Under the pieces are notes generated by a model, which was given only the letters and a program-made list of their open reading frames with translations, did not search any database and was not told the DNA's origin. A stretch of 64,000 bases of DNA. Source: Guillardia theta CCMP2712. Its lineage: Eukaryota > Protista > Cryptophyta. The translations under genes and the position numbers were made by a program. The stretch is taken from assembly GCF_000315625.1 (NCBI RefSeq), contig NW_005434650.1:628369-692368 (forward strand). Direction: 5' to 3'. Below, in pieces: positions 9,148-38,157 of this stretch. The number at the start of each line of letters is the position of its first letter. Positions within the stretch are counted from its first letter, which is position 1.

Positions 9148-12100
9148 TCACCAGAGTTTGATGCTGCTGTCCTGTGAAGCAGAGAGCAGGCGGCCGGAGG
9201 AGGTGAAGCACAGGCGAGACACTTTGTTCTCGTGATTGGTATCAATCACGGCGATGCAGGTGTGACTGTACAGGTCCCAAAGTCTGCCAGGCAGAGGGAG
9301 GGAGGGGGACAGGGAGGAAGAGGAAGAGGAAGAGGAAGAGGAAGAGGAAGGGGGGAGGAAGAGGAGAAGCAGATATATCAGGCAAGGGCGTCAGGAGCGG
9401 TCAACCGACTACCTGATGGTCTCGTCATCTGATCCGGAGGCCAGGAAGTGCCGATGGGGCTCGAGGACAAAGTTTTCTCCACAGACAGGGATGAAGGTGT
9501 TACCTGAGATGAAACATCAGAGAGGACTTGTCAAGTATCACAGTGTCGATCACAGAATATCAACACTTCTCCATGATCGTTCTCCTTGTCGTCCAGCACC
9601 TGCAGATGATAGCTACCTCCCTTCCCAGCAGAGTACGTCACTGCGCATTCCCAGCCATCAGGGAACTGTTCCCCCTTCCTCGTCCTCCCGATGCTCGTGT
9701 CCCACTTTACCCTGCAGGCCTGCTTGTCCTGCGAGACTCGGGTAATGACGCCGGGACCTCCCTTCGACTCGTCCACGTTGTCCCTCCTCTTCAGCCACTC
9801 CTGTCCTTCACTCGACACCTTCACTCGCATGCCGACCGCAGGAGGCGTCTCTCTGCCCACCAGCAGAGCATCAGGCGAGATCGGCACCCAGCCGCCATAG
9901 TCGGCTCCATCGGGAGGGCCTGTGCCGTCAGCGCCTGAGATCTTGCATGCTCTGGTGAGGTAGTCCGGTAGCAGGTCGCCGACGACGCCGTGCCAAGACC
10001 CCATGAAGTCATCTCCTGTACCGTTCCAGTCCCAGACCTCCACTCTGACAGGGATGTTGCGCACGCTGCTGCCTGTGGGCGACTTGATGTCTCGAATCTC
10101 GGGAAGGATGAAGAAGAATGTTTCGTTCCATCTCGGATTCCTGTTCTGTTTCATCACCCTGGTCCGGGCGGACTTCTCCTCAACCTTATACAACTTCCCG
10201 CTCACTTTCACGATCCCCCCCACGATCACCACAGCGAACGGATCACTGGAGCCCTCGCCGTCCATTCCAACGTCCGCCACGTCCAGGTCCCTTGCCTTCA
10301 ACAGGCTGATGGTGACGCAACAAAACCGCTGGCACTCTTCGCCGGTCCGGTACTCCGACATCGTCAGCTGCGACTGAGCCCGCCTGGGGCTCTCGAAGCT
10401 CGGGTTCTCATCCTGAACCACCTCATGGAGTTGAGAGACGAGGACGGAGGTGAACGAGGAGAGGCTGGTCACGTAGGCGCTATGACCCTCTAGTCTTGTT
10501 ATGATCTTGGACTGCAGATGGTCCATCACTATGATCGACTGATCGCTAGTGGCCACGTACAGCCGCCCCCCGTACGACAGCAAGTCATTGCAGATGTTGC
10601 CCTGGAGGTCCACCATGGCGAGGGCCGCGAAGCTGAAGACATCCCAGATCCTGACTGTAGTGTCCATGGAGCCTGAGAAGATGCGTCGATCGTCGACACA
10701 CAGTGCGGTGATGGAGCTAGTGGAAGGAGAGGACAAGCATCAGTCATACTCGCAAGCCAACAACTTCTTCTGCCTACCTGTTGTGACCTTTGAGCACCCC
10801 TAAGGGCTCGGGCCCTTCCGCGTCGGCTCCCTTATCTCCTATGAATGTTGCATCGTAGACATGGATGTTCCGATCGCTGGATGCTGTGTACAGTCTGACG
10901 AGCCCGTGAGCAAGTTCATGGCGGATGTTGGGGTTGATTCGCCTGTGTACCAGGCATGTGATGTTGCCCTGGTGCCGGTTGAACTTCTGCAGACAGGGGA
11001 TGGTCGAATTGGATTGAAGCATCTCCTCTGCGATTTGAAAGGTGTGGAGGTAGTTTGAACCCGTGAACAGCTGGAGTGAGTACCTGCCGCTGCCAACCGC
11101 CAGGCAAGAGACCACCTCATCGAAGTACAGGTCAATCACTCTGATACATTCACCCGTCGTCATATCCCAAACTCTCACAGTCTTGTCCATCGACGAGGAG
11201 AAGAGCAGGTTCTCATGCTGGCCGAGGCTCGTCACTGTCTGGTAGTGACCCCAGAGTGTTCTTTCGCACGACGTTGACAACATCTCGCAGAAGTCAACCT
11301 GCCGATTCCGAATCGTCGGCTCGTGCATCTCGTCTAGGGTTTCTTTCTTGAGGTAGGGGAGATCGCAAGGTCGAATCAATTCCTCTACCACAGAGAGGAA
11401 CATGTTTCTCAAGTCGTTCAATATCCGATGACGTGCTTTCCGTGACCCTGGTTGGTTCTCGGGGCAACAGCAACAATCCGCATCGGATGATCGAACTTTC
11501 TTCTGATCGATGTCTGGGAGCATTTGTTAGTTGGTTTCAACTGCTTCACAGTCCTCGCCTGTTAGATTCAGCTCTTCATTCACTGCAACCTTCAAATCTT
11601 GGAGCTTCAAGATCTGCGCAAGAATATCCTGAATGTACTCAACGATACTGGAGGGATCGGTCTTGGATTTGAACACCATGGCGATCATCAAGCACTTGTA
11701 AGCCAGCACTTTATCCTCGTCATCACCTTGTAACATTGACAACACCTTGTTCGCCAACCGTTTCACGTCACTCAGGAGCGAGTCCGCGGCATAGAGCTGG
11801 TTGAGAATCTGAGCACTGACAGACTTGATCAGGCCTTCGATCATGGCGTGAAGATCCTTCTTCACTGAAGGGTTGATCCCATTCCTCACAACCTCCAAGC
11901 TGCAGAGACTCGTGAGCTCGTAAAACACCACTAGCACAGCTGCTGACCTTGATCTCATCTTCTGCAAGATGGTCTGAGACGTCTGAGCCTTGAAGCTCAG
12001 GTCAGAGTTGTCCACAACAACCTCTGGCCCCCAAGGTCTTCGGATGACTGTCTCGTCCTCTTCTCTTGTCACCGTCTGCTCCATCTCACTTCCTTCATCC

Positions 12101-13839: not shown

Positions 13840-15290
13840 CTACTCTTCGTTTCTGCATGCAACCTGTGCTTTCTTCGTGTCTTCGTCCGCCGTCTCTCCT
13901 CCCGTTGTCCACATCAGTCTGCGATTCAAGTTAGCCTCGATCAACATCCCAGGAAGAAGAAGCAAAGACCTCCGTTCTTCCTCAGAGAAGCTCTCCAATG
14001 ACAATCCTTCTCTCACTCTCAACTGCTATAGCATCACCCAAGAGCAGCAGATGGCAGACTCTTCTTCCAACCTCTCGCACCCCCAAGTGGTTTAAAGTAG
14101 CGTATTGATACAAAAGACGATCTGCCTCGTGAGGCTCCAAGTCTGCATCGCCGAGGTCAAGACCCACAGGAGATGGTTCGCATGCTTGCCAGACCTGTCA
14201 TCTTTCCTCCCAGCGCCAGCTCCCGCTTCCTCCTCCCCCTGGCGAACAGGTCATCGTGCTCAAAGCGTATGCTGGAAGGCGGCCACTCCCACCAGTGAAT
14301 GCAGATTCCCGCTGCAACGCTGACGTTGAAACTCTCCGTCAGCCCTGACAAAATTCAACGACGTCATGACCAACTCAGATTGAAAGGATAGCATCTTGTG
14401 ATCGTTTACACAGGGGAATACATGAATACCATGCATGTCAATGCAGAAATCGCCATCGCACAGCTCTGACATCTCCTGTGAGTTACTTAAGCTCCTGGTG
14501 TAAGGCGTCGCTTCTTCTCACCGAGGAGACGCCATTCTTCTCGTTGCCTATGATCAATGCTGTCTTCTTGCCGAAGTCAACCTCACTGGCAGGAATATGA
14601 GTCCTCTCTCCCTCCTCCTTCAAGATTGCCTGAGCTCTACAGGGTTTCTCGCGGTGTCAGTTTGAGGGTTTCGTGGCTTGGCAGCGAGGATCTGGGAAAA
14701 ACCTTCTTGACGGAGGTGATGCAGGCAGTCTCCAGCGGTCTACGAATGAGAGTGACAACCCTCCAGCTGGCACCCAGCACTCACGTTGTGGAAGTGAATC
14801 CTCAGCCACTGCTCCCCGCCTTTCGTGATCGACTTGGAGAGGCTGGTCCTTCTTTGCGGCTTGTCCCTCACATAGCGGATGACATGCAGGTCGAGCAGCC
14901 CCAACGCCTCCGCCGTTCGCATCACTGCCGCATGGTTCCCAGGGTCTTGCACCCCATCAATGACAATTCGAAATCCGGACATCCTGTTAAGGACAGCTCT
15001 CTGCAGCTTTGCGAGCCTCTGAGGAAGAGCGCTGATTACAACCGATATCTCAGCAGCTCAAGCCCTCTTGCCTGAGGAGCGACGGGCAACAGCATGTGAA
15101 TCATCGGCCCCCTGCCAGCCTGAAATACCAATCACATCTCCCGAACGAGTGTCTAGCAGCAGCTCTGCTGCTATCGCTCTCCTACCCTGACAAGTTTCAG
15201 ATCTCCCCACTGCCCTAGCCCCCTCAGCATACTCCCATCCTCTTGCCTGCTCTGCCTCACTCCGTCCTCCCTACCCCAGTCCCCCTACAC
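13840..15290 (-). CDS. SPOUT-class tRNA/rRNA 2'-O-methyltransferase (TrmH/SpoU family); both ends approximate
   Basis: IVIDGVQDPGNHAAVMRTAEALG (motif 1), GNEKNG (motif 2), IDMHG|LTESFNVSVAAGI (motif 3). Confidence 0.88.
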
Positions 15291-15412
15291 GTGTTTGATC
15301 GCCCGATCGGACGAGTGCATGTTTCAAGGGGCTATCCCTCGTCCCCCCGCTGATCCATTCCGTTCAGCTGCTGCTTATGCTGCTCACATTTGAGCGTGAG
15401 GCCGAGATTAAG

Positions 15413-15543
15413 TAGAGGAGAGGAGAGGAGAGGAGGGGAGAGGAGTGGAGAGAGGAGGAGAGGAGAGGAGAGGAGAGGAGAGGAACAGGGAAGAGAGGAG
15501 AGGAGAGAGGTGAGGTGAGGACAGGAGAGGTGAGGTGAGGAGA
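15413..15543. repeat. (GGAGA)n-type pentanucleotide microsatellite directly upstream of the pseudokinase ATG
   Basis: Degenerate gagag/aggag array. Confidence 0.9.
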
Positions 15544-15545
15544 CA

Positions 15546-18503
15546 ATGGACTCGTTGGCAATTGTGAAGGACATTCTGGTGCTGGTCCAATGCTTGGTCG
15601 AAGACAGCTCCTTTCTGGCATTGTGCAAGAAGACGAAGTTGGAAGAGGGCCTTAACACCCTGGTTGACATGAAAGAGAAAACCGCCAACATGAAATGGCC
15701 TAATGTCCCATCAGATATGACGCTCAACAGGCTGCTGAGGTTGCTCGCTGTGACCAAAGGGTTCCTCGGCTCGTTTAAAGATCCGCGGAAGAGTTCTGAT
15801 GAGCTTGAAGTGTTCGAGAAGAGCATAGAAGGGACGATTCAGTCAGTCACAGGATTCTGGCAGAAAGCTCTTGTTGAAGCAGCCAACCCCGATGAAGAAG
15901 AGGATGCCGATTGGTGGCCATTCGACGTGCAGATGAAGACTTTGGAAGGGTTCACACCGGAGACCCTGGAGATTGATAGGAACCTGCAGGGGTTGCCAGT
16001 GAAGCAGATCTATGCTGGAGAGGGGAAGATCATCGGTGTGGGAACATACGACGGGGTAGAGGTTCATGTAAAGATGCCGAACAAGAATCTCTACAACTCA
16101 GCGATAGTCAAGAAAGCCCTGGAGGAATTCTCAACAGAGAAGTGCATGCTTGAAGCTATGTTTCATCCATACATTGCCACATGCCTGGGGGGCCTAACAG
16201 TTGACCCGCAATCTAATCAGCCTCTGATGTGGCTGGTATACGAGAAGTTCAGCATGAATCTGGTTGATGCTGTGAATAAGAAGGTGCTGGAGAGCGAGGA
16301 CACACGGCTGCGAATCATCTGGGGGGTCCTGCAAGCCATCTCTTACTTGCATGTTGAGTTTCGACCCCCTGAGGGTGACAAGACTCAGCCTTTCATCTTG
16401 GGCAACTTGAAGCCGAGCGATATCATGCTGGTTACCGACAATATCCCGAAGCTGTTCGAGCTTGGACGAACCAAGGTCAGCGACAAGTACCTGCGATCGT
16501 TGACTGGGATACCAGTGGTCATCGAGTACATGGCGCCCGAGCAGATCAAGTCGCACCAGATGACGACAGAGGCAGATATCTACTCCTTCGGGCTTGTTGC
16601 ACGTTACGTATGGACGGGCAAGACGCCGACGAATGAAGGGCGGCCTGTGTCAAAGGTAGCTACATCTTCTGCAGCAGAGCGTTGGATGCCGAACAGGTTG
16701 ATGGACGGAATGCCCAACGGAATCTCTGCCACACTCCATCAATGCATCAAGCCAGACCCGAGCAATCGACCAGATGCAAAGCAAGCTCTTCACAAGATGA
16801 AGTTCGAGATGGGGATGATTAAACAATCAATCATGCACGGGGGCGATGTCAACGGACAGAACGAGATGCCATTCTGGCGGGAGCTGAACATCTGGAAGTT
16901 TGGAGATCCGGACACTGAGTCCGGCAGCCTGACCAGCTCGAGGGTGTTTGACGATGACGATGATGATTCTGGCTTCGACGACGATCTCTACGGGATCAAG
17001 CAAGCGACGATCGACAAGTTGGACTCCATAATTGAGCAGTTTGAGCAGGTAAGTGACCTGGGGAAGGCGAATGGTGCTGACGATGAATGCCCAGCAAATC
17101 AACGAGAAGAAGCTTCTGATGGATTCAGATGAGCTGATGCAGCTGAAAAAGACAGTGTCGTCTGAGACCATGAAGGCAAGCTTCAATGAGATCATTGAAA
17201 GTATCAAACAGTCTGGGATGCCGGACCCCGGGTTGGGACCGGGAGATTCGGAAAAGAAGCTCGTGGAGCTGTGTGAAGCGACCTTCTTCACAAAAGCAAC
17301 GGGGGCGAAGTCTAAGTCTGAGCTTGCGAGAGTAGAGCGTGACCTGTCGAGCATGAAGGGTATGTGGATTGAAGGTGGAGAAAAAGGATTTTGATCGCGC
17401 TATGCAGACGCATTCAGCATCGTTCTGTACAGATCAGAAGAAGAGTCAGGAAAAGACATGCATCTAGTTGAGCTACACTTGAACGGGGTAAAGCTCGATG
17501 CGCAAATTCTTACATGAAAGTTGAATTTATGTTTCAAGGGCTTCACTTGGAAGTTCTTGAAGGAGATGTTGGTTCAGAAACTGGGAATGAAAGAGGTGAG
17601 TGTCCTTTTGAACATGTTTCGACCAGTTTTGCAGTGAATGCACTTTCACTCTCCGTCATCTCCCGACGCCTTGTGGAGGACTGATGGGTTGACGCAGATC
17701 CATGGGATAAAGTTCGAGCTCATGGATTCGTCGGAGCAGTATCTGTGCCGAAATGAGGACGAGTGGATGGTGTGCTTGATTATTTTCAATCCGTGACAGC
17801 CTCTCACGTAGCTGGCAAGACCTGTGTACAGGCGATACTGAAGCAGCCGGAGGCGATGGCGAAGGCCTACCTCATGAGGGAGGTGACACGCTCCCCTGCT
17901 GCTGATGCGACCGTTGAAGTTGGTGGTTGCAAACGCAGGCGCCCATGAAGGCGTTCAAGGTTTCGTTGCCGGTGACGCTATCGAAGGGAGGGGAGGTGGG
18001 GAGGTTGCTGACCACGAAAGCAGGTCAGCACGAGCTCTCAGCCCGCGTTCCACAAGAAGAAGATCTCTTACGAGAACTTCTACGACTCGCCCGTCATGTA
18101 CATCCTGTCGAGCAACAGTCAGGTGGGTCGAGTTTCCGTCTCTACAGGGGAGTCATTCTGGATTTCCTGCAGAACGTGCAGCCGTCGAAGGATACGAAGA
18201 TCTTCGTGAAGAAGAGGGAGAAGGCAGATTCCGCTTGCTGCTCTCACAAAGTACTGACGCTTCTCCTCAAGACGGCGGTGAACTTCAGGATACGATCCTC
18301 GACCAGAGCAAAGGAGGAGGTAAGTTCGAGCCTGCCTGAGTTTCAGGTGGATGGAGAAGTTGACAAGTGATGGCTAGACTTCTTATCTGTACCTGACGGA
18401 GACTGAGACGAACATCGTCCACACACTGAAGGTGATGCAGAGACATCGGGAGAGTGAGCTGACGCTGGAGCAGATCTTCGTGAAGTGGAGCGAGGAAGGT
18501 TGA
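15546..18503 (+). CDS. N-terminal helical bundle + TKL-like pseudokinase + C-terminal extension (possible PB1-like segment); multi-exon
   Basis: Kinase-fold motifs VHVK, HPYI, YMAPE, DIYSFG present, but HRD reads LGN and DFG reads ELG; downstream exons splice to ...IFVKWSEEG* at 18503. Confidence 0.75.
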
Positions 18504-26314: not shown

Positions 26315-28874
26315 TCATATCACGATGATGTTGTGCTTCACAGAAGAGGAGGAGGAGGAGGAGGAGGAGGAGGAGGAGGAGGAAAAAAGTCTCCATAGCA
26401 GTTGAGCTGCCCTCTCCCACGAGCGCACCCAGACCTCTGGTCGGAACAGGAAACTGCTCCTTCTCAGTCAGCCATCGCAAAGACGCCCGTCTCCTCACCT
26501 GCTGCTCCGAGTTGCCTGCAGCCTCCTCCTCACCTCTGCCAGCTTCTTGTAGCGGGGGAACGGGGGGCACTTGCAAGATGCGCCTGCTTCACAGCTGGGC
26601 TGCAGCAGGCGCCGAGCGATCATGAGGAAGTCCTCCTCGTTCCTAGCGGTGAGATGAGAGATGCCGAGATCCTCGTTGAGACTTGATCCTAGAACATGCA
26701 CACCGGTCAAAGTGGGAGTGAAGTGAATTTGGATGCCAGAAGAACGAGGAGGAGGGAGGAGGGAGGCAGAGTTGGGGGAAGGAGGATTGAGGATGGAGGA
26801 GGAGGAGAAGGAGGAAGGAGGAAGGAGGAAGGAGGAGGAGTAGGGAGGGAAGAGGAGGAGGAGGAGGAGGGAGTGAGAGCAGGAGTATGGGTAGTAGGGT
26901 ATTAGATGAGGATGGAAGATGGAAGGGAGCAAGAGCTTGCGAGGGAGGAGAGGAGAATACCAACTCGATCACAAAGTCGTTCTCCGGGCAGCGTAAGAGT
27001 TGGAACCCCCGCCCAGAGAGCGTCCGCTGCTGTGCCATGAGCCCCGTAGCGGAGCGTGTCGAGATGTATCCAAGCGCGAGACTGGGAGGAATGAGTCGTG
27101 AGTTGAAAACAAGGGGCAGGAGGAGGAGGAAGAAGGATGCGGGAAGGAATGATGAGGAGGAAGAGGGATAACAGCAAGACCTTGAGGCTGATGTGCTCGG
27201 ATTCTTCGCTCAATTCAGTGAATTTCAGTCGTTGAGAAGAGATGTTTATCGAATGTGCTTGTGATCTGAGATGTCCTGCAGCAACATCCGCGTTGTTTCC
27301 TGCAAGATTTGATCAGATCAGATGCACGTACAGCCTGGTTTCAACAATGGATTCTGCTGTCGTCTCAAAATGATACGAGAGAAGTGAACTTTGAGAGAAT
27401 GGCTCTATACGACATGTATCTTGTCGTTTTCATATGGATTTGCCTTACCATGCTTCAACAACCAGAGAGCCGAGTCGTCGTCCGACAGAAGAGCTCTCAT
27501 CCACAGCGACCAGGTTGACCTCCACAGAGTCGTCAGACACCACGAGCACAACCTACCTCCTCACCTGTCGATCTTCAGCATCCTGTTAAAAGACGCGAGA
27601 ATGGGGCGATGGCCACAAGTCGACGTATTGATCCCTTCCTCCTCGGCTTCCTCCCGCGGCTGCTGCTCAAACTGCCAGCAAGTTCAGCACCCTGGCCTGC
27701 CGGACGCGACGAGGGACCTTCTCGGGGTTTCCAAGAGGGGGATGAGGGAACATATGAGCATGATCGGTCGCCAAGAAGGTGTGGGGGAGAACGACAAGCT
27801 TCTCCGACATCATCATCGAGTGTTCTGGTGGGACAACAACCTTGTCCGACAGGTACAAGTCGATCCAACAGGCTCCCGAGGTCCCCGCGTAGCTCCTGAA
27901 CAGCAGCTGGAGAGGAGCTGGACGCAGAGCAAGGACGTCTGCTCGTGCTCCCTTCGTGTGGCCGTTGAGGTCGAGCAAGATCTGCAGGACTGAATTTCAG
28001 ATTCTAGGAAGCAGGAGGGGAGAGGAACAGAGGCAGAGGGGGAAAGCAAGCTTCTCGTCACCATGATCTGTGCGGAGGAGATGCTTTCAGCCAGCTCTTG
28101 GGAGGAGGAGCTACGGCCAGTTACTGGTTCGACGCCGTGGATGACGTTCTCGACAGCAGCTTCCACCCTCCTCCTGCACTGACTCCCATCGCTCTTTGTC
28201 GTCATGATTGCGACGATGTGGAACTTTCTTGTGCTGTGGCTGGCCAGAAGCGTCTGCATGCTTTGACAAACAGTGTGAGCTCCGAAGTCGCTGGACATGT
28301 ATCCTATCGTGATTCGCCGATCTTGCCGCTTGCTCAGCGTCACGACGAGCTCAGGTAGCAGCAGGCGGCAGCTCCTCGCAACATGGTCCGCGTGATTCCT
28401 GCTCACCTCCAGCTGGACTCTTGGGTTCACGTCGTACACCTGCGCCTCCCACGGGGTGAGAGAAGAGAGGTTCCCCCACCACCTGGTCTTCCTGCCCTCC
28501 TGCTGGGGTTGGAGCTGGTGAGGTATCAGTACCTTCATCATCCACTCGAAAAGCTCCTCAAATTCTTCCCACTTGCATAATTCCCGCAGTCGGAGCAGGA
28601 CGGACGCGAACGCGTTTGACAGCAGCTGCTCTCCACCTGGGAAACTCCCGAGCTCGAGAGCCTCCCTGTAGTACCTTCCTGCTGCAGGGAAGTTTCCCAG
28701 CTCCTTCTCAGCTCGTCCGAGGGCCCCGAGGATCTGAGCTCTGTGCGGGTCAACCACTGCGCCCCACCTGTGCATCTTGAGGGCCTTGTGCAAGTGTTCG
28801 CGAGCTTCGACGAAGTTCTCAATGTCCAGGAGGACGATACCGAGGTCCTCGTGCAGGAACGCTGAAGTATGACC

Positions 28875-28933
<59 letters not shown>

Positions 28934-29790
28934 CGTCGGAAGGGGAGGGCATGGATGAGCAGCTTGCGATTCCAGTTTGAAGCCACTTTCTCGCTTTCTT
29001 CAGCTTCTTGCCCTCCCTGAGCGTTTTGCCCATCCCAAGGAAAGCGTCGCATATCACTGCACGTTGGCAGACCTGGCTCCTTCCAGCAGAAACTTGGGGT
29101 TGAGATGATGGAAGCTTATGCGCCCCGCACAGGGTGAGCACCTTCTTGAATGACTTCTCGGCGCCCTCAAGTTTCCTCGCCTCCAACAGGGTCCTCGCGT
29201 ATGCGAGCAGCAGGGACATGTCTTCCTTCTGCTGCTCCATCAGCTCCTTGTAGATATTGAGCGCTTCCTTGTACCTGTTCAACTTTCGCAAGACGAGAGC
29301 ATACTTGACCCAGACCTGCGCGTTCTGTGGCCCCTCGGCAAGCGCTGCCTTGTAGTATCTCGCGGCGTCTTCATACCTCTCCAGCATGGAGTAAGCCTGC
29401 GCTAGGAAAGGAAGTGCAGCTGTTCGATGCTCCTTGAGAGCTTCTTCATAGCACCTCACTGCTTGCTCCCAATCGCTCTTTCGCTCAGCGATGGCGCATT
29501 TTAGCATCTGGTCATCCGTGCTTAGCTCCAACCCTGCCTCCTCTCGCTGCAAGATCGTTTGTTCAGCTTCATCGACATGTCCAAGTTGGAAGTGAGAGAG
29601 TGCAAGATGTGTGTAGACGATCGTCTTCTGCTGAGTTGACAGTTCTCGTTGGAATCTCCGCAGGAGTATGCTCAAACAACGCACAGTGCGCGAGAAATGA
29701 AGGGCTTCAACTGACCGGCAGGAAGCAGCCCAGGCTGAAGCAGCATATCCTTAGTGTCGCTCTCCTTGCATGGCTCGTTCAAACAGGGAG
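26315..29790 (-). CDS. TPR-containing GT41 protein O-glycosyltransferase (OGT/SEC-like); 5' end uncertain (near gap)
   Basis: Multiple TPRs in ORF 27813-29684; IGYMSSDFGAH, LDLNGHTKGAR..LALRPAPLQ, ASFNRMLKID, LDTLRYGAHGTAADALWAGVP, terminal FLFRPEVWVRSWERAAQLLW..IIVI*. Confidence 0.88.
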
Positions 29791-33204: not shown

Positions 33205-36200
33205 TCATAGATCATCGTCCATGTCGATCTCCTTGCTCAACCAGATGCACTGAGGAGCAATCTCCTGTGATATCCCCCGTACGTGTGTCAGGACCTGATT
33301 GTAATGCACGTCTTCGAACTTGCCATGCTGCAGCCTCTGCTCGTAGGGAGGAAGGATTTCCATAAGCGCCCTCAGGTTATTGACCGCCTCGACCTCCACA
33401 CGCTGAAGGTGCCGCTGCAAGGAGTCGTTAGCACTGCTCTTCTGCTTATGAGATTCCAACTCGACCATGACGATCTTCCTGATCATGAACGTCAGCATCT
33501 CGCTGATGTTGACTTGGTTCCCAGGGACGCTCTGGTAACTTTGGGAGCACTTCCTGGTGACTTCCTTGGGCAGGGGAGGCGGCAAGACCGTGCGGGGGAT
33601 TCCGACGGGAACGAGGATGCTGGTAACGCTATCAGCTTCCTGCGAGCCATTTGAAGAGTTGATAGAGTCGTGCCGACTCCCTGACGTTGACACTCCGGGG
33701 CTGGCTGGAGCAACGAGCGACATCGTCATTCCTGCATTCCGACCATTCACACTGTCCTTGACTGTGCAATGATTGGCAGCGAGCGGGTGGCCAACCACTG
33801 CGTTCGGAGAATGCTTGATGACTGTTGGGTGAGGGTTCGCCATGCCATTGGGGTAAATCAGAGGAGCATTGTCCGAGCCGTTGCTTCCTTGACCTTGCTT
33901 TTGAATTCTCTTCGTCGCCATCAGATCTACAACGTAAGCCTCCGGTGCCTGGGGATGGCAAGGAAACCCTGCAGTGACGGCAGGTCGATCAGCACTTGCC
34001 CCTTTGCTTCCTCCAGACTTCCGGCCTTTCTTCGGCCCTTGTCTTCCTTGGCTCAAATTCACACCGGGCGGGTTCTTCAGCAGGCCTGGCACCTGAGAAT
34101 GACCATTGGAGAATTGCGAAGCAACCAATTCGTGAGGACTAGCAACAACAGTGTTCAGCCCCTGATTGAGTGTAAGATGTTGAGCTTTTCCATCCTTCTT
34201 GTCCCCTTTATATACGGAGCTCGCCAGCAGCGGTGATGTTCTGCTCAAAGGTAGAAGGGTTGGAAGCTGATTGCCCAAACTGACATGCGCCATCGATCCA
34301 GAGACATTAGAGACGGGCTGAGCATTCGAGATCATATTCAAGTCGTTTCTGACTGGACCATTCGAGCTGGGAACAACCGATAAGCTCAATTCATGTGGCT
34401 TTGCAATGGTTGTAGAAGGCACATTCGACTGAAGGACTGTCGGTGCTCCCTTCTCCATTCCCAAGTACTGTCTTTGCTGCTGACTCTCACCTTGGCTCAG
34501 AAACCTCGTCATGGCCTCCACATTGCTGTGCAGTTTCTCCAGGTCCTTCCCCCTCTCGGTCGACACAGCCATTGAAACATCGCTCGGGTTAATTGCTACG
34601 CCAGATGCCCGTGCATGTCCATTATTCTGAGGAGGCATCACACTTTGGGGGGAAGTTCCGAATTCGACGGCTCGAGGACCTTGTCCCTTCTTTCTCCCTT
34701 TCTTCTTGTTGTTGGCTTGACTTCGGTTTGTAGTGCAAATTCCTCCGAATTCATTTCCTTGAGCGCTAAGAGGATTCAATTCTGTGTGTTGAATGATCAC
34801 ACCGACCTCTCCTTGGTCCTTTGCAAGTTCACTGGAGTTCATAATGGCAAACGTTGTCTGAGCATCATTCCCACTTTCAGTCTTCACTGCATGGTTCATC
34901 ACAGCTGTAGAAACGTCATCTTTCTTAATGGCCGGCAGAGCATGCGAGTTTTCCAGTCCGTTCAACGTCAATTGCACTTCTGCTACCGTCTCTATCAAGC
35001 TAGAATTATTTGATTTCACCTCCAAAGTCAATGCTTCCTGACCAGAGCTTGCGGGTGTATCCTCTTTTGTGACTGAAGATTGCGGTATTGGTCCAGTATC
35101 ATTCTCCAGTTTCTTTTCGTCTGCTATGCTCTCCTGACTACACTTTTCTGTGGAGACGTTTTCTTGCTGTGATGACAAATTTGGTTGTGATTTCTCAGCC
35201 TCGGACGAACCAGCAACTGCAATTGGAGTCTGTGAATCAACGTTAGGGTTCAACACTTTGTCCTCTGATTTGACATGTTCATGGCTGGTCAGACTGAAAT
35301 CAACATCGTTGTCTACTTCCAGAAATTCAAAGTCTGCATGATCACCACCATAATCTTGGCGATCTTGCTTCTGTGAGTCCCCTTGAAGCTTGCTCTTCTC
35401 AGACAACAACAAGTGCTCTCGATGTTTCTTCAATTTCGAAAATCTATCCAGCTTCGTCATGCTGTTTGCAGCCTTTGTCCTCTTAGAAATCATCACAGAA
35501 TTTTCTCTGATGTTCTTCGAAAAAGGACGTAACCGCTTCAATTCTTGCAATTCTTTTCTTTTCCTGTTGAAAGCAAATGATTGCGACCTCTTCTTTTTCA
35601 ATCCAAGATCAAGAGCAAGTTTCGAGTTGTCACAACGAAATGCAAAGTGCTTCCGTTGCTCAAAGTTCTCGATTCCTCGGATATTCCCAACAACACCTTT
35701 CTGTGCTGCTTCTGAAGCTCCGAAGTCATCACACTCTAAATCCATTGGAAACTGAATCTTCTGTTCATATAGCCTCCATACTTTCTCCAAACCTGATTCA
35801 AAGCTTCTTATCCACCTTTCTGGATCGAATAGTGGAGCGCTTAATCGGTTAGCTTGCAGTTTCGTCTTCCATTCTCTCAACATCACCGGATCGTTTCCAA
35901 GTTTTACCGCCAATTCTTCATACTCCGCTAGATTCGATACTGCCATTTCAGGCATTCCGACAGACTTTGCGATACATGTAGCCACAAGCGAAGGCCAGTT
36001 ATCGCCACTGACAGTCACGAAGGGAACTCCAGCCCACAGCATATCACTAGCTGTTGTATGTCCGTTGTAAACAATGGTATCCAAGCAGAGGTCGGCCAGC
36101 GTGACTCGTTTGAGATGTTCGATCTTCGGGCTACAGGGTGGTCCAAACACAAGGCGTTCTGGGGGTATTCCTGATCGTTTCGCTTGTAGTTGTAGCCTTG

Positions 36201-38157
36201 GCACAGCTGCCTTCGGATGCTTGTATAACCAAATTACACTGTTCGGCACTCTACGAAGAATATTCATCCAGATTTGAAACAAGTCTGCAGTAATCCTACC
36301 AAGTCTGCAAAAGTTACAAAATACAACTGTTGGATGATCTGGGAGTTGATGATCGTCCCTGGTAGGAAGATTCTTTTGATCTAAAATTTCTGGATAAAGG
36401 TGACGGAAGGAGTTTGTCTGATAACAGTAAGGCATATGTAGAATTCGTTCAGTATAGAATTCCCGGTGCTTCTCTGGGCATACAGTTCGATCGGCGACGT
36501 TGAAATCGATGTAATCTGCCCCCATTGTGCCTGGATAAGCTAAGTAAACAAGCTGCACGGGTGCAGGGCGAAGCGCGCTGATTCCATTACGGTCCCCAGC
36601 AGTATGCCCATTCAAATTGACCAGGATGTGTATTCCATCTTCAGCAATCGCCTCTGCACATTTCTTGTCGTTGTCTCGTTGAGAAAAATTACGAAAATGC
36701 TCAATTTCTTGAGCAATTGTTTTTCGGTAATGCGAATTATCATCATCTCGTGTGATGGAGTAACAGAAAATTTCAAATTTAGAGTCGTCATGCAGCAAGA
36801 GAGCGCTTTGGATCAAGTCTGCTGTTGGATGGTCCACAAAATCTGAGCTGATATAACCTATTCTTAGACGCGGAATGCCATTTTCGGAAGGATTCAAGAT
36901 TATCTTTTCATCCCTCCATGCATGGTATTCATCGTCATCTTCTTTGTTCGGTTTTTGCTTGATGAGTTTCAAAGCTTTTTCCTTCGCATCTTTCGCATAT
37001 GCCTCCGCTATCCGTCGAATCGTACCCTTGTCAAAGCTTACTCCAGAAGAGGTGTAATGCAACGCATGAAAGGGCATAATGACAGGAACCTCACCATTAT
37101 CCAATTGATTCAATACATGTCGCACTAGTGGTTCAATATTTCTGTACCATTCCTCCCATGCGCACGCACAAAGCAAGTCAAACACAAGTTGAGAAAAGCA
37201 GTCTTGTCCTTTCGAGGAAATATCATTGCCTTCTAGCCGTTCTCTAGACTTAGCAATATTCTCTTTCAACATCTCATCGTACCGCTCTTGCCCAATGCAC
37301 TCGGGACAATGCCAAAAGTCAGGTGGAACCGTCGCATTACTGAGGCACATACACGCAAAACAGAATGACCGACAACACGAATCGCAGGTGGTCGACTCGA
37401 TCTCATGATATCCACACGAGCAGCACTGCAACGCCTGTTCTGGCAGCTTCCATGGACCTCTACATGTTTGACTTACAACCAGCACATGTTTTTCCAATTT
37501 TTCATGGGCGTGATGTATACAAGCATTGCATGTCCAGCGATGGGAAAGAGGAAAATTTGCAAGAATACCCATGCAGCTCTTATGAAAGCTAGATGGACAC
37601 TCAGAACAATGGACGTCAACTCCAGCATGCCCACATACATCGCAAAACCTCGAATTGTTGTATTTCTTCTGCAACTTTCGCAAGAGTTGATTTTCCGTTT
37701 CATTGGCGCCCGTAACAACCACTTCAAATTGATCCATTCTCTCTGAAAGAGCTTCTTCTGGAAGTATAGCGATCTCTGAATACGATACTTGGCTCCCCTC
37801 GCTGAAGGCCGACCCACAAGCTGGACAAAACTTCCAAACACCTAAATTTTCACGGATTAAGGGTCCCCAGAAGATACCATGGCAATGACTACAAATGTAT
37901 CCAGTATCTCTGCCAAAAAGTGGCTCCTCATTAAACCTCAAGCGTTTCCTGTTCCTTTTTGGACCTTTGCTATGCCGTTTTCGTCCAAACACGGTAGGCT
38001 TTGGACAAGTTTCTGGGGTATCCCTTGGACCTGTTTCTGGGGGTTCCTGTGGAGCAGTTTCTTGGGGGACGCTTTCAGGATGTTCGTTGACAGCAAGAGT
38101 GGGATCCGAATCGACATCATCCACTGCAACCAGTGAAAAGTCCGCCGTTGAATCCAT
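33205..38157 (-). CDS. Intronless 1650-aa Zn-ribbon + 2x PHD finger + GT41 (O-GlcNAc transferase-type) catalytic domain + long disordered tail
   Basis: CSHC..CPAC; CDVC..CSECPSSFHKSC..WTCNAC; CCSC..CDSCCRSFCFAC..WHCPEC; RIGYISSDFVDHPT, ILVNLNGHT, LRPAPVQ..YPGTMGA, KIEHLKR, LDTIVYNGHTTASDMLWAGVP; basic NLS-like patches. Confidence 0.9.
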   Translation of the reverse strand: MDSTADFSLVAVDDVDSDPTLAVNEHPESVPQETAPQEPPETGPRDTPETCPKPTVFGRKRHSKGPKRNRKRLRFNEEPLFGRDTGYICSHCHGIFWGPLIRENLGVWKFCPACGSAFSEGSQVSYSEIAILPEEALSERMDQFEVVVTGANETENQLLRKLQKKYNNSRFCDVCGHAGVDVHCSECPSSFHKSCMGILANFPLSHRWTCNACIHHAHEKLEKHVLVVSQTCRGPWKLPEQALQCCSCGYHEIESTTCDSCCRSFCFACMCLSNATVPPDFWHCPECIGQERYDEMLKENIAKSRERLEGNDISSKGQDCFSQLVFDLLCACAWEEWYRNIEPLVRHVLNQLDNGEVPVIMPFHALHYTSSGVSFDKGTIRRIAEAYAKDAKEKALKLIKQKPNKEDDDEYHAWRDEKIILNPSENGIPRLRIGYISSDFVDHPTADLIQSALLLHDDSKFEIFCYSITRDDDNSHYRKTIAQEIEHFRNFSQRDNDKKCAEAIAEDGIHILVNLNGHTAGDRNGISALRPAPVQLVYLAYPGTMGADYIDFNVADRTVCPEKHREFYTERILHMPYCYQTNSFRHLYPEILDQKNLPTRDDHQLPDHPTVVFCNFCRLGRITADLFQIWMNILRRVPNSVIWLYKHPKAAVPRLQLQAKRSGIPPERLVFGPPCSPKIEHLKRVTLADLCLDTIVYNGHTTASDMLWAGVPFVTVSGDNWPSLVATCIAKSVGMPEMAVSNLAEYEELAVKLGNDPVMLREWKTKLQANRLSAPLFDPERWIRSFESGLEKVWRLYEQKIQFPMDLECDDFGASEAAQKGVVGNIRGIENFEQRKHFAFRCDNSKLALDLGLKKKRSQSFAFNRKRKELQELKRLRPFSKNIRENSVMISKRTKAANSMTKLDRFSKLKKHREHLLLSEKSKLQGDSQKQDRQDYGGDHADFEFLEVDNDVDFSLTSHEHVKSEDKVLNPNVDSQTPIAVAGSSEAEKSQPNLSSQQENVSTEKCSQESIADEKKLENDTGPIPQSSVTKEDTPASSGQEALTLEVKSNNSSLIETVAEVQLTLNGLENSHALPAIKKDDVSTAVMNHAVKTESGNDAQTTFAIMNSSELAKDQGEVGVIIQHTELNPLSAQGNEFGGICTTNRSQANNKKKGRKKGQGPRAVEFGTSPQSVMPPQNNGHARASGVAINPSDVSMAVSTERGKDLEKLHSNVEAMTRFLSQGESQQQRQYLGMEKGAPTVLQSNVPSTTIAKPHELSLSVVPSSNGPVRNDLNMISNAQPVSNVSGSMAHVSLGNQLPTLLPLSRTSPLLASSVYKGDKKDGKAQHLTLNQGLNTVVASPHELVASQFSNGHSQVPGLLKNPPGVNLSQGRQGPKKGRKSGGSKGASADRPAVTAGFPCHPQAPEAYVVDLMATKRIQKQGQGSNGSDNAPLIYPNGMANPHPTVIKHSPNAVVGHPLAANHCTVKDSVNGRNAGMTMSLVAPASPGVSTSGSRHDSINSSNGSQEADSVTSILVPVGIPRTVLPPPLPKEVTRKCSQSYQSVPGNQVNISEMLTFMIRKIVMVELESHKQKSSANDSLQRHLQRVEVEAVNNLRALMEILPPYEQRLQHGKFEDVHYNQVLTHVRGISQEIAPQCIWLSKEIDMDDDL

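Follow-up and report, generated by a model that had tools for sequence, protein, structure and literature searches.

A TKL-like pseudokinase behind a predicted N-terminal four-helix bundle in the cryptophyte Guillardia theta: a candidate MLKL-like effector

A gene of the cryptophyte Guillardia theta CCMP2712 encodes a protein of 789 amino acids in which a predicted four-helix bundle at the extreme N-terminus is followed by a TKL-like kinase domain with substitutions at the catalytic motifs and by a long C-terminal extension. The gene lies on the + strand of what we call the window, the whole 64,000-nucleotide stretch that was analysed (NCBI RefSeq assembly GCF_000315625.1, contig NW_005434650.1, positions 628,369 to 692,368), where it starts at position 15546. 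This layout resembles that of the MLKL-type effectors of vertebrates and seed plants, whose four-helix bundle is under the control of a pseudokinase. We favor, tentatively and at somewhat below even chances, the reading that the protein is a regulated effector of the MLKL-like kind. The stronger proposal, that cryptophytes own a true MLKL-type executioner with a bundle of the HeLo/MLKL_N class, a pseudokinase gate and a tail for oligomerization or docking, we consider unlikely.

Pseudokinase domain and gene structure

Residues 175-417 matched the Pfam profile Pkinase with an E-value of 5.7e-20 and a score of 72 bits, where the cut-off is 31.7, and PK_Tyr_Ser-Thr matched at 2.4e-16. By sequence, residues ~151-420 are a TKL-like member of the kinase superfamily. 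The nearest solved kinases in the PDB were TKL or plant receptor-like, namely DLK/MAP3K12, SYMRK, SOBIR1, CTR1, ZAK and MLKL. When the PDB was searched with the kinase, MLKL (6vc0) aligned over residues 157-419 with an E-value of 1.7e-7, and the bit scores of MLKL (33), DLK (38) and the plant receptor kinases (36-38) were too close to separate them. The motif residues could be located in these alignments as follows.

16071-16073, + strand: lysine of the VAIK motif, kept as K176 (CTR1 and CaMKI alignments)
16137-16139, + strand: glutamate of helix alpha-C, kept as E198 (CTR1 and CaMKI alignments)
Residues 164-166: glycine loop, kept as G164-x-G166 (CTR1 and CaMKI alignments)
16398-16406, + strand: HRD replaced by L285-G286-N287, LGN (DLK/MAP3K12 alignment)
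16419-16421, + strand: catalytic-loop asparagine replaced by D292 (DLK/MAP3K12 alignment)
16458-16466, + strand: DFG replaced by E305-L306-G307, ELG (DLK/MAP3K12 alignment)
16533-16541, + strand: APE kept as A330-P331-E332 (DLK/MAP3K12 alignment)

The three positions that define a pseudokinase were all changed, with N287 in place of the HRD aspartate, D292 in place of the catalytic-loop asparagine and E305 in place of the DFG aspartate. By sequence the domain has thus lost its catalytic base along with the two metal ligands but kept the nucleotide-holding residues, and it is presumably inactive as a kinase. In general terms this is the pattern of kept and lost residues of MLKL, where the counterparts of HRD and DFG are HGK and GFE. 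A first-pass annotation of the window, made from the letters alone, had described a kinase fold that lacks the catalytic aspartate and DFG and retains the VAIK lysine and APE, and the Pfam match and the PDB alignments both agree with that description.

Among 5.8 billion proteins a single relative was found, a protein of 528 amino acids from Hanusia phi in EukProt (P0001) with 66% identity. Conservation is uneven along the protein, with 44% identity in the bundle, 29% in the linker that follows it, 80% in the kinase and 82% over residues 441-501. Every kinase motif residue listed above, kept or changed, is identical in the Hanusia protein, and so is the entire activation segment, whose hydroxyl-bearing residues (Ser, Thr and Tyr) include S312, Y315, S318 and T320. 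A metagenome scan returned one match (L001), which was rejected as an unrelated kinase with 28% identity.

In the list of open reading frames (ORFs) the gene appears as a + strand ORF of 528 codons with an ATG start (15546-17132). Two in-frame stops precede the ATG, at distances of 5 and 10 codons, and together with the matching N-terminus of the Hanusia protein they fix the position of the start codon. Contigs were drawn from four public sequencing runs and set against the window. In two runs of different studies, X1 and X5, spliced contigs joined 17048 to 17095 and left out seven further short segments, and each of the eight gaps is a GT..AG intron, 46-102 nt in length. The spliced message has nine exons and encodes 789 amino acids, with the stop codon at 18368-18370. 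These spliced contigs from two studies demonstrate transcription and processing of the gene. The gene end at 17132 that had been taken from the ORF has to be moved, since the spliced contigs run on through eight introns, and the last 27 codons of the ORF come from intron 1 and then from exon 2 in a wrong frame. Of the "extra C-terminal module" proposed in the first-pass annotation, a real C-terminal extension stands, but the end of the ORF is in part an intron read-through.

A contig from run X12 was unspliced, in the genomic form, and colinear with the window. Contig depth at the locus was similar to or above the depth of the neighboring gene, and raw RNA reads in run X20 amounted to 2 in 6% of the run data. 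The transcript contigs extend about 90 letters upstream of 15549 into a tract that was left out of the read comparison as a repeat (15404-15548). The Hanusia entry has an end of the same kind. Its residues 502-528 are 21% identical over the part read from intron 1 and 77% identical over the out-of-frame part of exon 2, and because this is the same read-through artefact, P0001 very likely derives from an intron-retaining transcript. Its true C-terminus is probably missing from the database. The parts of the gene are as follows.

15404-15545, + strand: GA-rich, low-complexity leader, the 5' untranslated region (sequence and contigs)
15546-15890, + strand: predicted four-helix bundle, residues 1-115 (structure prediction, fold comparisons and hydropathy)
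15891-15995, + strand: acidic linker, residues 116-150 (prediction confidence, composition and identity to Hanusia)
15996-16805, + strand: TKL-like pseudokinase, residues 151-420 (Pfam and PDB alignments)
16866-17048, + strand: conserved tail of exon 1, residues 441-501 (identity to Hanusia)
17049-17094, + strand: intron 1, 46 nt, GTAAGT..CAG (joint in the X1 and X5 contigs)
17095-18370, + strand: exons 2-9, residues 502-789 and stop (eight joints, two runs)
17095-17359, 17408-17487, 17539-17595 and 17698-17769, + strand: exons 2-5
17820-17882, 17939-17971, 18024-18122 and 18173-18370, + strand: exons 6-9, with the stop in exon 9

The GA-rich tract at 15404-15548 (GAGGAGAGG-type) abuts the start codon, and on its opposite strand it contains Ser/Pro/Leu-rich ORFs that are probably not genes.

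The linker between bundle and kinase contains 11 aspartates or glutamates among its 35 residues and is predicted to be disordered, with a predicted local distance difference test score (pLDDT) of 35-41. Past the kinase the protein continues for about 370 residues, about 290 of which are encoded by exons 2-9. Residues 441-501 hold a Trp-rich segment followed by six consecutive aspartates, and a long amphipathic helix starts in the tail of exon 1 and crosses the junction of exons 1 and 2 (residues 481-508 in a low-confidence full-length model). No Pfam match was found for the tail of exon 1 after the kinase, even at an E-value of 10, or for residues 502-789 when they were searched exon by exon. 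By eye, residues 590-680 (exons 3-6, 17408-17882) may form a PB1-like or other beta-grasp domain, an impression given by alternating hydrophobic strands and an acidic D-x-x-E...N-E-D-E segment.

The N-terminal bundle and its possible relatives

The structure of residues 1-140 was predicted by AlphaFold 2 (AF2) from an alignment of two sequences, the window protein and its Hanusia orthologue. The best model had a mean pLDDT of 77 and a predicted template modelling score of 0.71, with pLDDT values of 81-91 over residues 1-115. Helices were placed at residues 3-18, 21-29, 33-48, 57-77 and 84-113, which together form a four-helix bundle whose first helix (residues 3-29) is kinked at residues 19-20, and residues 123-140 were disordered. 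The helical nature of the first ~110 residues, which had been read from the letters, is borne out by this model, and the order of an N-terminal four-helix bundle (predicted) followed by a pseudokinase is supported by AF2, Pfam and the PDB alignments together. Hydropathy over 17-residue windows is higher in helix 1 (residues 1-27; Kyte-Doolittle mean 1.6-1.8) than anywhere else in the 789-residue protein. A bundle of four helices that starts at the very N-terminus and has a hydrophobic helix 1 is a trait of the HeLo/MLKL_N/RPW8/CC executioner superfamily, and the predicted structure shows it. Conservation in the bundle peaks at D41-S56, the end of helix 2 and the loop after it, with three invariant lysines and one tryptophan.

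The bundle model was superposed by VIA-align on 48,161 representative chains. The four-helix domain of CBL ranked first (Z 9.5) and IncA second (9.3), followed by the coiled-coil (CC) domain of potato Rx in third place (Z 9.0), and the RPW8-type CC domain (CC-R) of Arabidopsis NRG1.1 ranked sixth (8.6). When VIA-align was applied to the top 1000 chains from Foldseek, Rx-CC reached Z 10.4, and NRG1.1 CC-R and NRC2 CC each reached 8.7. The executioner domain of human MLKL reached Z 7.6 for 6zvo (112 residues, 4.1 Å) and Z 7.4 for 6zz1 (107 residues, 3.3 Å). For scale, the accepted homologues AtMLKL3 and mouse/human MLKL superpose at 3.7-4.0 Å. The superpositions on Rx-CC, NRG1.1, NRC2 and MLKL were all colinear from the first residue. 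These fold matches, made with a predicted structure, all have Z values in the grey zone for helical bundles; they are consistent with the MLKL-like idea and are no proof of it. A Foldseek check of the N-terminal domain, suggested in the first-pass annotation, had a mixed outcome, with no significant match in the PDB although MLKL and CC domains were among the best VIA-align superpositions.

A comparison of ESM language-model features pointed in the same direction. All top clusters among the neighbors of the window bundle were MCAfunc, MLKL_N, DUF7792 and RPW8 (0.82-0.77), and the Hanusia bundle, which is 44% identical, had the same set of neighbors at 0.88-0.81 with about 160 shared features. 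When these four families were removed, the best named family scored 0.79 with 116 shared features. Because the fold ranking and the embedding neighbors of two orthologues are concordant, though weak, and because the bundle lies at the N-terminus and has a hydrophobic first helix, we think it somewhat more likely than not that the bundle is homologous to the MLKL_N/RPW8/CC class.

Sequence searches gave no such indication. A profile of the N-terminal domain matched PDB chains by chance only, with no MLKL chain among them at an E-value of 10, and a Pfam search with residues 1-140 found no match at the same threshold, including MLKL_N (PF22215). An exhaustive hmmsearch over 1.84 billion representatives returned one spurious match. 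A word search with residues 1-140 found no match and missed the Hanusia orthologue too, so that its blank weighs little. The likeness of the CKK, VPS and NR..G..F elements to human MLKL, noticed by eye in the first-pass annotation, has no statistical support in the PDB profile or Pfam searches, and of the residues concerned the Hanusia protein keeps only C27, P55, S56, N61, G72 and F73. Overall, the proposed kinship with MLKL is left with MLKL-type domains among the best fold matches and ESM neighbors, but with no sequence, profile or Foldseek match.

The single hmmsearch match (P0007) was rejected as a chance match, in which repeats of a tyrosine-phosphatase fragment match a short loop three times. 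In itself this protein of 411 amino acids, with a tyrosine-phosphatase domain flanked by three PTP-alpha-like copies, is probably a mis-assembled or repeat-collapsed prediction.

Regulated effector, scaffold and other readings

In MLKL and its plant counterparts, as in CC-R domains of the RPW8 type and the HeLo domains of fungi, a released bundle associates with itself and attacks a membrane or forms a channel. If the protein is an MLKL-like regulated effector, its pseudokinase, with the nucleotide-binding lysine and glutamate kept and the catalytic and DFG aspartates gone, would be the switch, and it would hold the bundle in an autoinhibited state until a release signal arrives. This signal could be phosphorylation of the fully conserved, Ser/Thr/Tyr-rich activation segment, or oligomerization through the C-terminal helix and domain. 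In the freed bundle the hydrophobic helix 1 would drive self-association, followed by attack on a membrane or formation of a channel. By analogy with the known effectors such a gated executioner function, with membrane or death activity, is conceivable for the cryptophyte protein, and we regard it as doubtful.

Several results weigh against an MLKL-like effector. In addition to the empty profile searches, including Pfam MLKL_N, and the spurious hmmsearch match, Foldseek found no match of the bundle model in the PDB at E<0.001, and an Atlas shape search with the bundle returned only bacterial helical proteins with template modelling scores of about 0.5. Identity in the structural alignments of the bundle was just 9-13%. 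According to VIA-align's own note, helical bundles without kinship may reach Z scores of about 13, and the values of 7-10 obtained here lie below this, with CBL, IncA and designed bundles scoring as high as the domains of interest. The ESM neighbors are leads only, as are all Atlas feature scores below 0.9. In the AF2 prediction just two of the five models exceeded a pLDDT of 70 with an alignment of two sequences, and the full-length model (pLDDT 32, again from two sequences) was too poor to judge how bundle and kinase pack. No two-helix brace of the MLKL type was predicted, as residues 116-150 were without stable helices in AF2. The net charge of the bundle is -1, with no obvious basic face for binding lipids, and by bit score the kinase is no closer to MLKL than to DLK.

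The main rival is a pseudokinase that serves as a non-lethal signalling scaffold and, in the manner of KSR, STRAD and the plant Raf-like partners, assists active kinases as an adaptor or allosteric partner. The bundle would then be a generic domain for dimerization or regulation, the C-terminal region would serve in docking, and the likeness to MLKL would reflect nothing more than a common arrangement of four helices. We consider this quite possible, if somewhat less so than the MLKL-like effector. It agrees with the equally good matches of unrelated bundles, with the missing sequence and Foldseek support for MLKL_N and with a bundle that has no net positive charge; the C-terminal part, long, conserved and with a helix of coiled-coil character, hints at docking between proteins, and the adjacent genes have no flavor of defence. 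Against it, the ESM neighbors of both orthologues are specifically MLKL_N, MCAfunc and RPW8, above the next family, executioner domains of plant NLR immune receptors take two of the six best places among 48,161 chains, and the bundle lies at the extreme N-terminus with an unusually hydrophobic helix 1.

An atypical active kinase, in which D292 and E305 take over from the catalytic-loop and DFG residues and the bundle is regulatory, is improbable. Such a kinase would fit the retention of the VAIK lysine, the alpha-C glutamate, two glycines of the Gly loop and APE, together with the acidic residues at 292 and 305, but the HRD base is now an asparagine, the histidine and arginine of HRD are lost, the aspartate and phenylalanine of DFG are changed, and all of these substitutions are fixed in both species. 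The combined loss of HRD and DFG residues is typical of pseudokinases. A lineage-specific orphan in decay, without a conserved function, is very improbable. The single relative, the fast-evolving bundle (44%) and linker (29%) and the few raw reads in X20 speak for it. Against it speak a frame of 789 codons that is intact over nine exons, spliced RNA that was assembled in two studies with contigs about as deep as the neighbor's or deeper, and a kinase and acidic/helical segment that are 80-82% identical to Hanusia.

Neighboring genes, wider meaning and known systems

A defence or kinase cluster was sought among the gene neighbors in the window and none was found. The neighbors encode unrelated proteins, namely a SpoU methylase, a WD40-C2 protein, an FAD synthase-like protein, and LRR, GTPase and TPR-GT41 proteins. 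One of them is divergently transcribed, an exon with a SpoU rRNA-methylase match (E-value 1.9e-7) at 14743-15025 on the - strand, which is covered by transcript contigs and lies about 520 nt from the start codon. In the intergenic sequence the X12 contig carries one extra C after 15280 (contig depth 4), which may reflect a strain difference or a mistake in the assembly. Further away on the - strand, WD40 repeats and then a C2 domain occur in adjacent ORFs at 9534-11523 that are probably exons of one gene, and at 27816-29684 there is a TPR array together with the beginning of a GT41 (O-GlcNAc-transferase-like) domain. A PHD-GT41 protein at 33205-38157 follows within a few kb of the latter, which places two GT41-type genes close together.

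Among the papers searched none linked MLKL-like proteins to cryptophytes, and the sole one naming both MLKL and Guillardia is on RIP kinases. A cryptophyte protein of MLKL layout would carry this module into a third, very distant eukaryotic lineage, and a single-celled one. For a single-celled organism it is difficult to see a reason for regulated lytic death other than the defence of kin against viruses. If cryptophytes do own a true MLKL-type executioner, the switch made of a bundle and a pseudokinase would either be older than the divergence of animals, plants and cryptists or have arisen repeatedly, and unicellular algae would have a necroptosis-like programme, directed for example against viruses. 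A small, expressed gene with a clear orthologue lends itself to a direct test of the idea.

The results do not support placing the protein in the MLKL family proper, as no profile match was obtained, no brace is predicted and the alignment scores of the kinase do not single out MLKL. Compared to vertebrate MLKL, the window protein has the same order of a (predicted) four-helix bundle from residue 1 and a TKL-type pseudokinase, the kinase aligns with that of MLKL over its whole length, and in both the beta3 lysine and the alpha-C glutamate are kept and the HRD and DFG aspartates lost. In contrast, the bundle of the window protein has no detectable sequence similarity to MLKL and no Pfam MLKL_N match, an acidic linker predicted to be disordered takes the place of the two-helix brace, LGN and ELG stand where MLKL has HGK and GFE, and the protein is ~370 residues longer at its C-terminus. 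We know of no RIPK3-type activator in the cryptophyte lineage, and no search for one was made.

The nearest ESM neighbors of both orthologous bundles were plant proteins with MCAfunc, DUF7792 or PUB10_N domains (MCA1/2 and CNR13-like proteins; 0.82 and 0.88), which differ from the window protein in having no kinase domain and for which no alignment supports the link. The plant MLKLs (AtMLKL1-3), described only in seed plants, share the order of modules, including a C-terminal extension without a known domain, and by analogy an immune-type effector is plausible in both. They differ in that they have a five-helix brace, whereas none is predicted in the window protein, and no sequence match connects the two. 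The plant extension is serine-rich, whereas that of the window protein is acidic and helical and then apparently folded. The CC domains of the NLR (nucleotide-binding leucine-rich repeat) proteins Rx and NRC2 of plants and the CC-R domain of NRG1.1 superpose on the predicted bundle as whole domains, over 101-108 residues from the N-terminus, with an identity of 6-13%. In the NLR proteins these domains are joined to NB-ARC-LRR modules, whereas in the cryptophyte protein the bundle is joined to a kinase.

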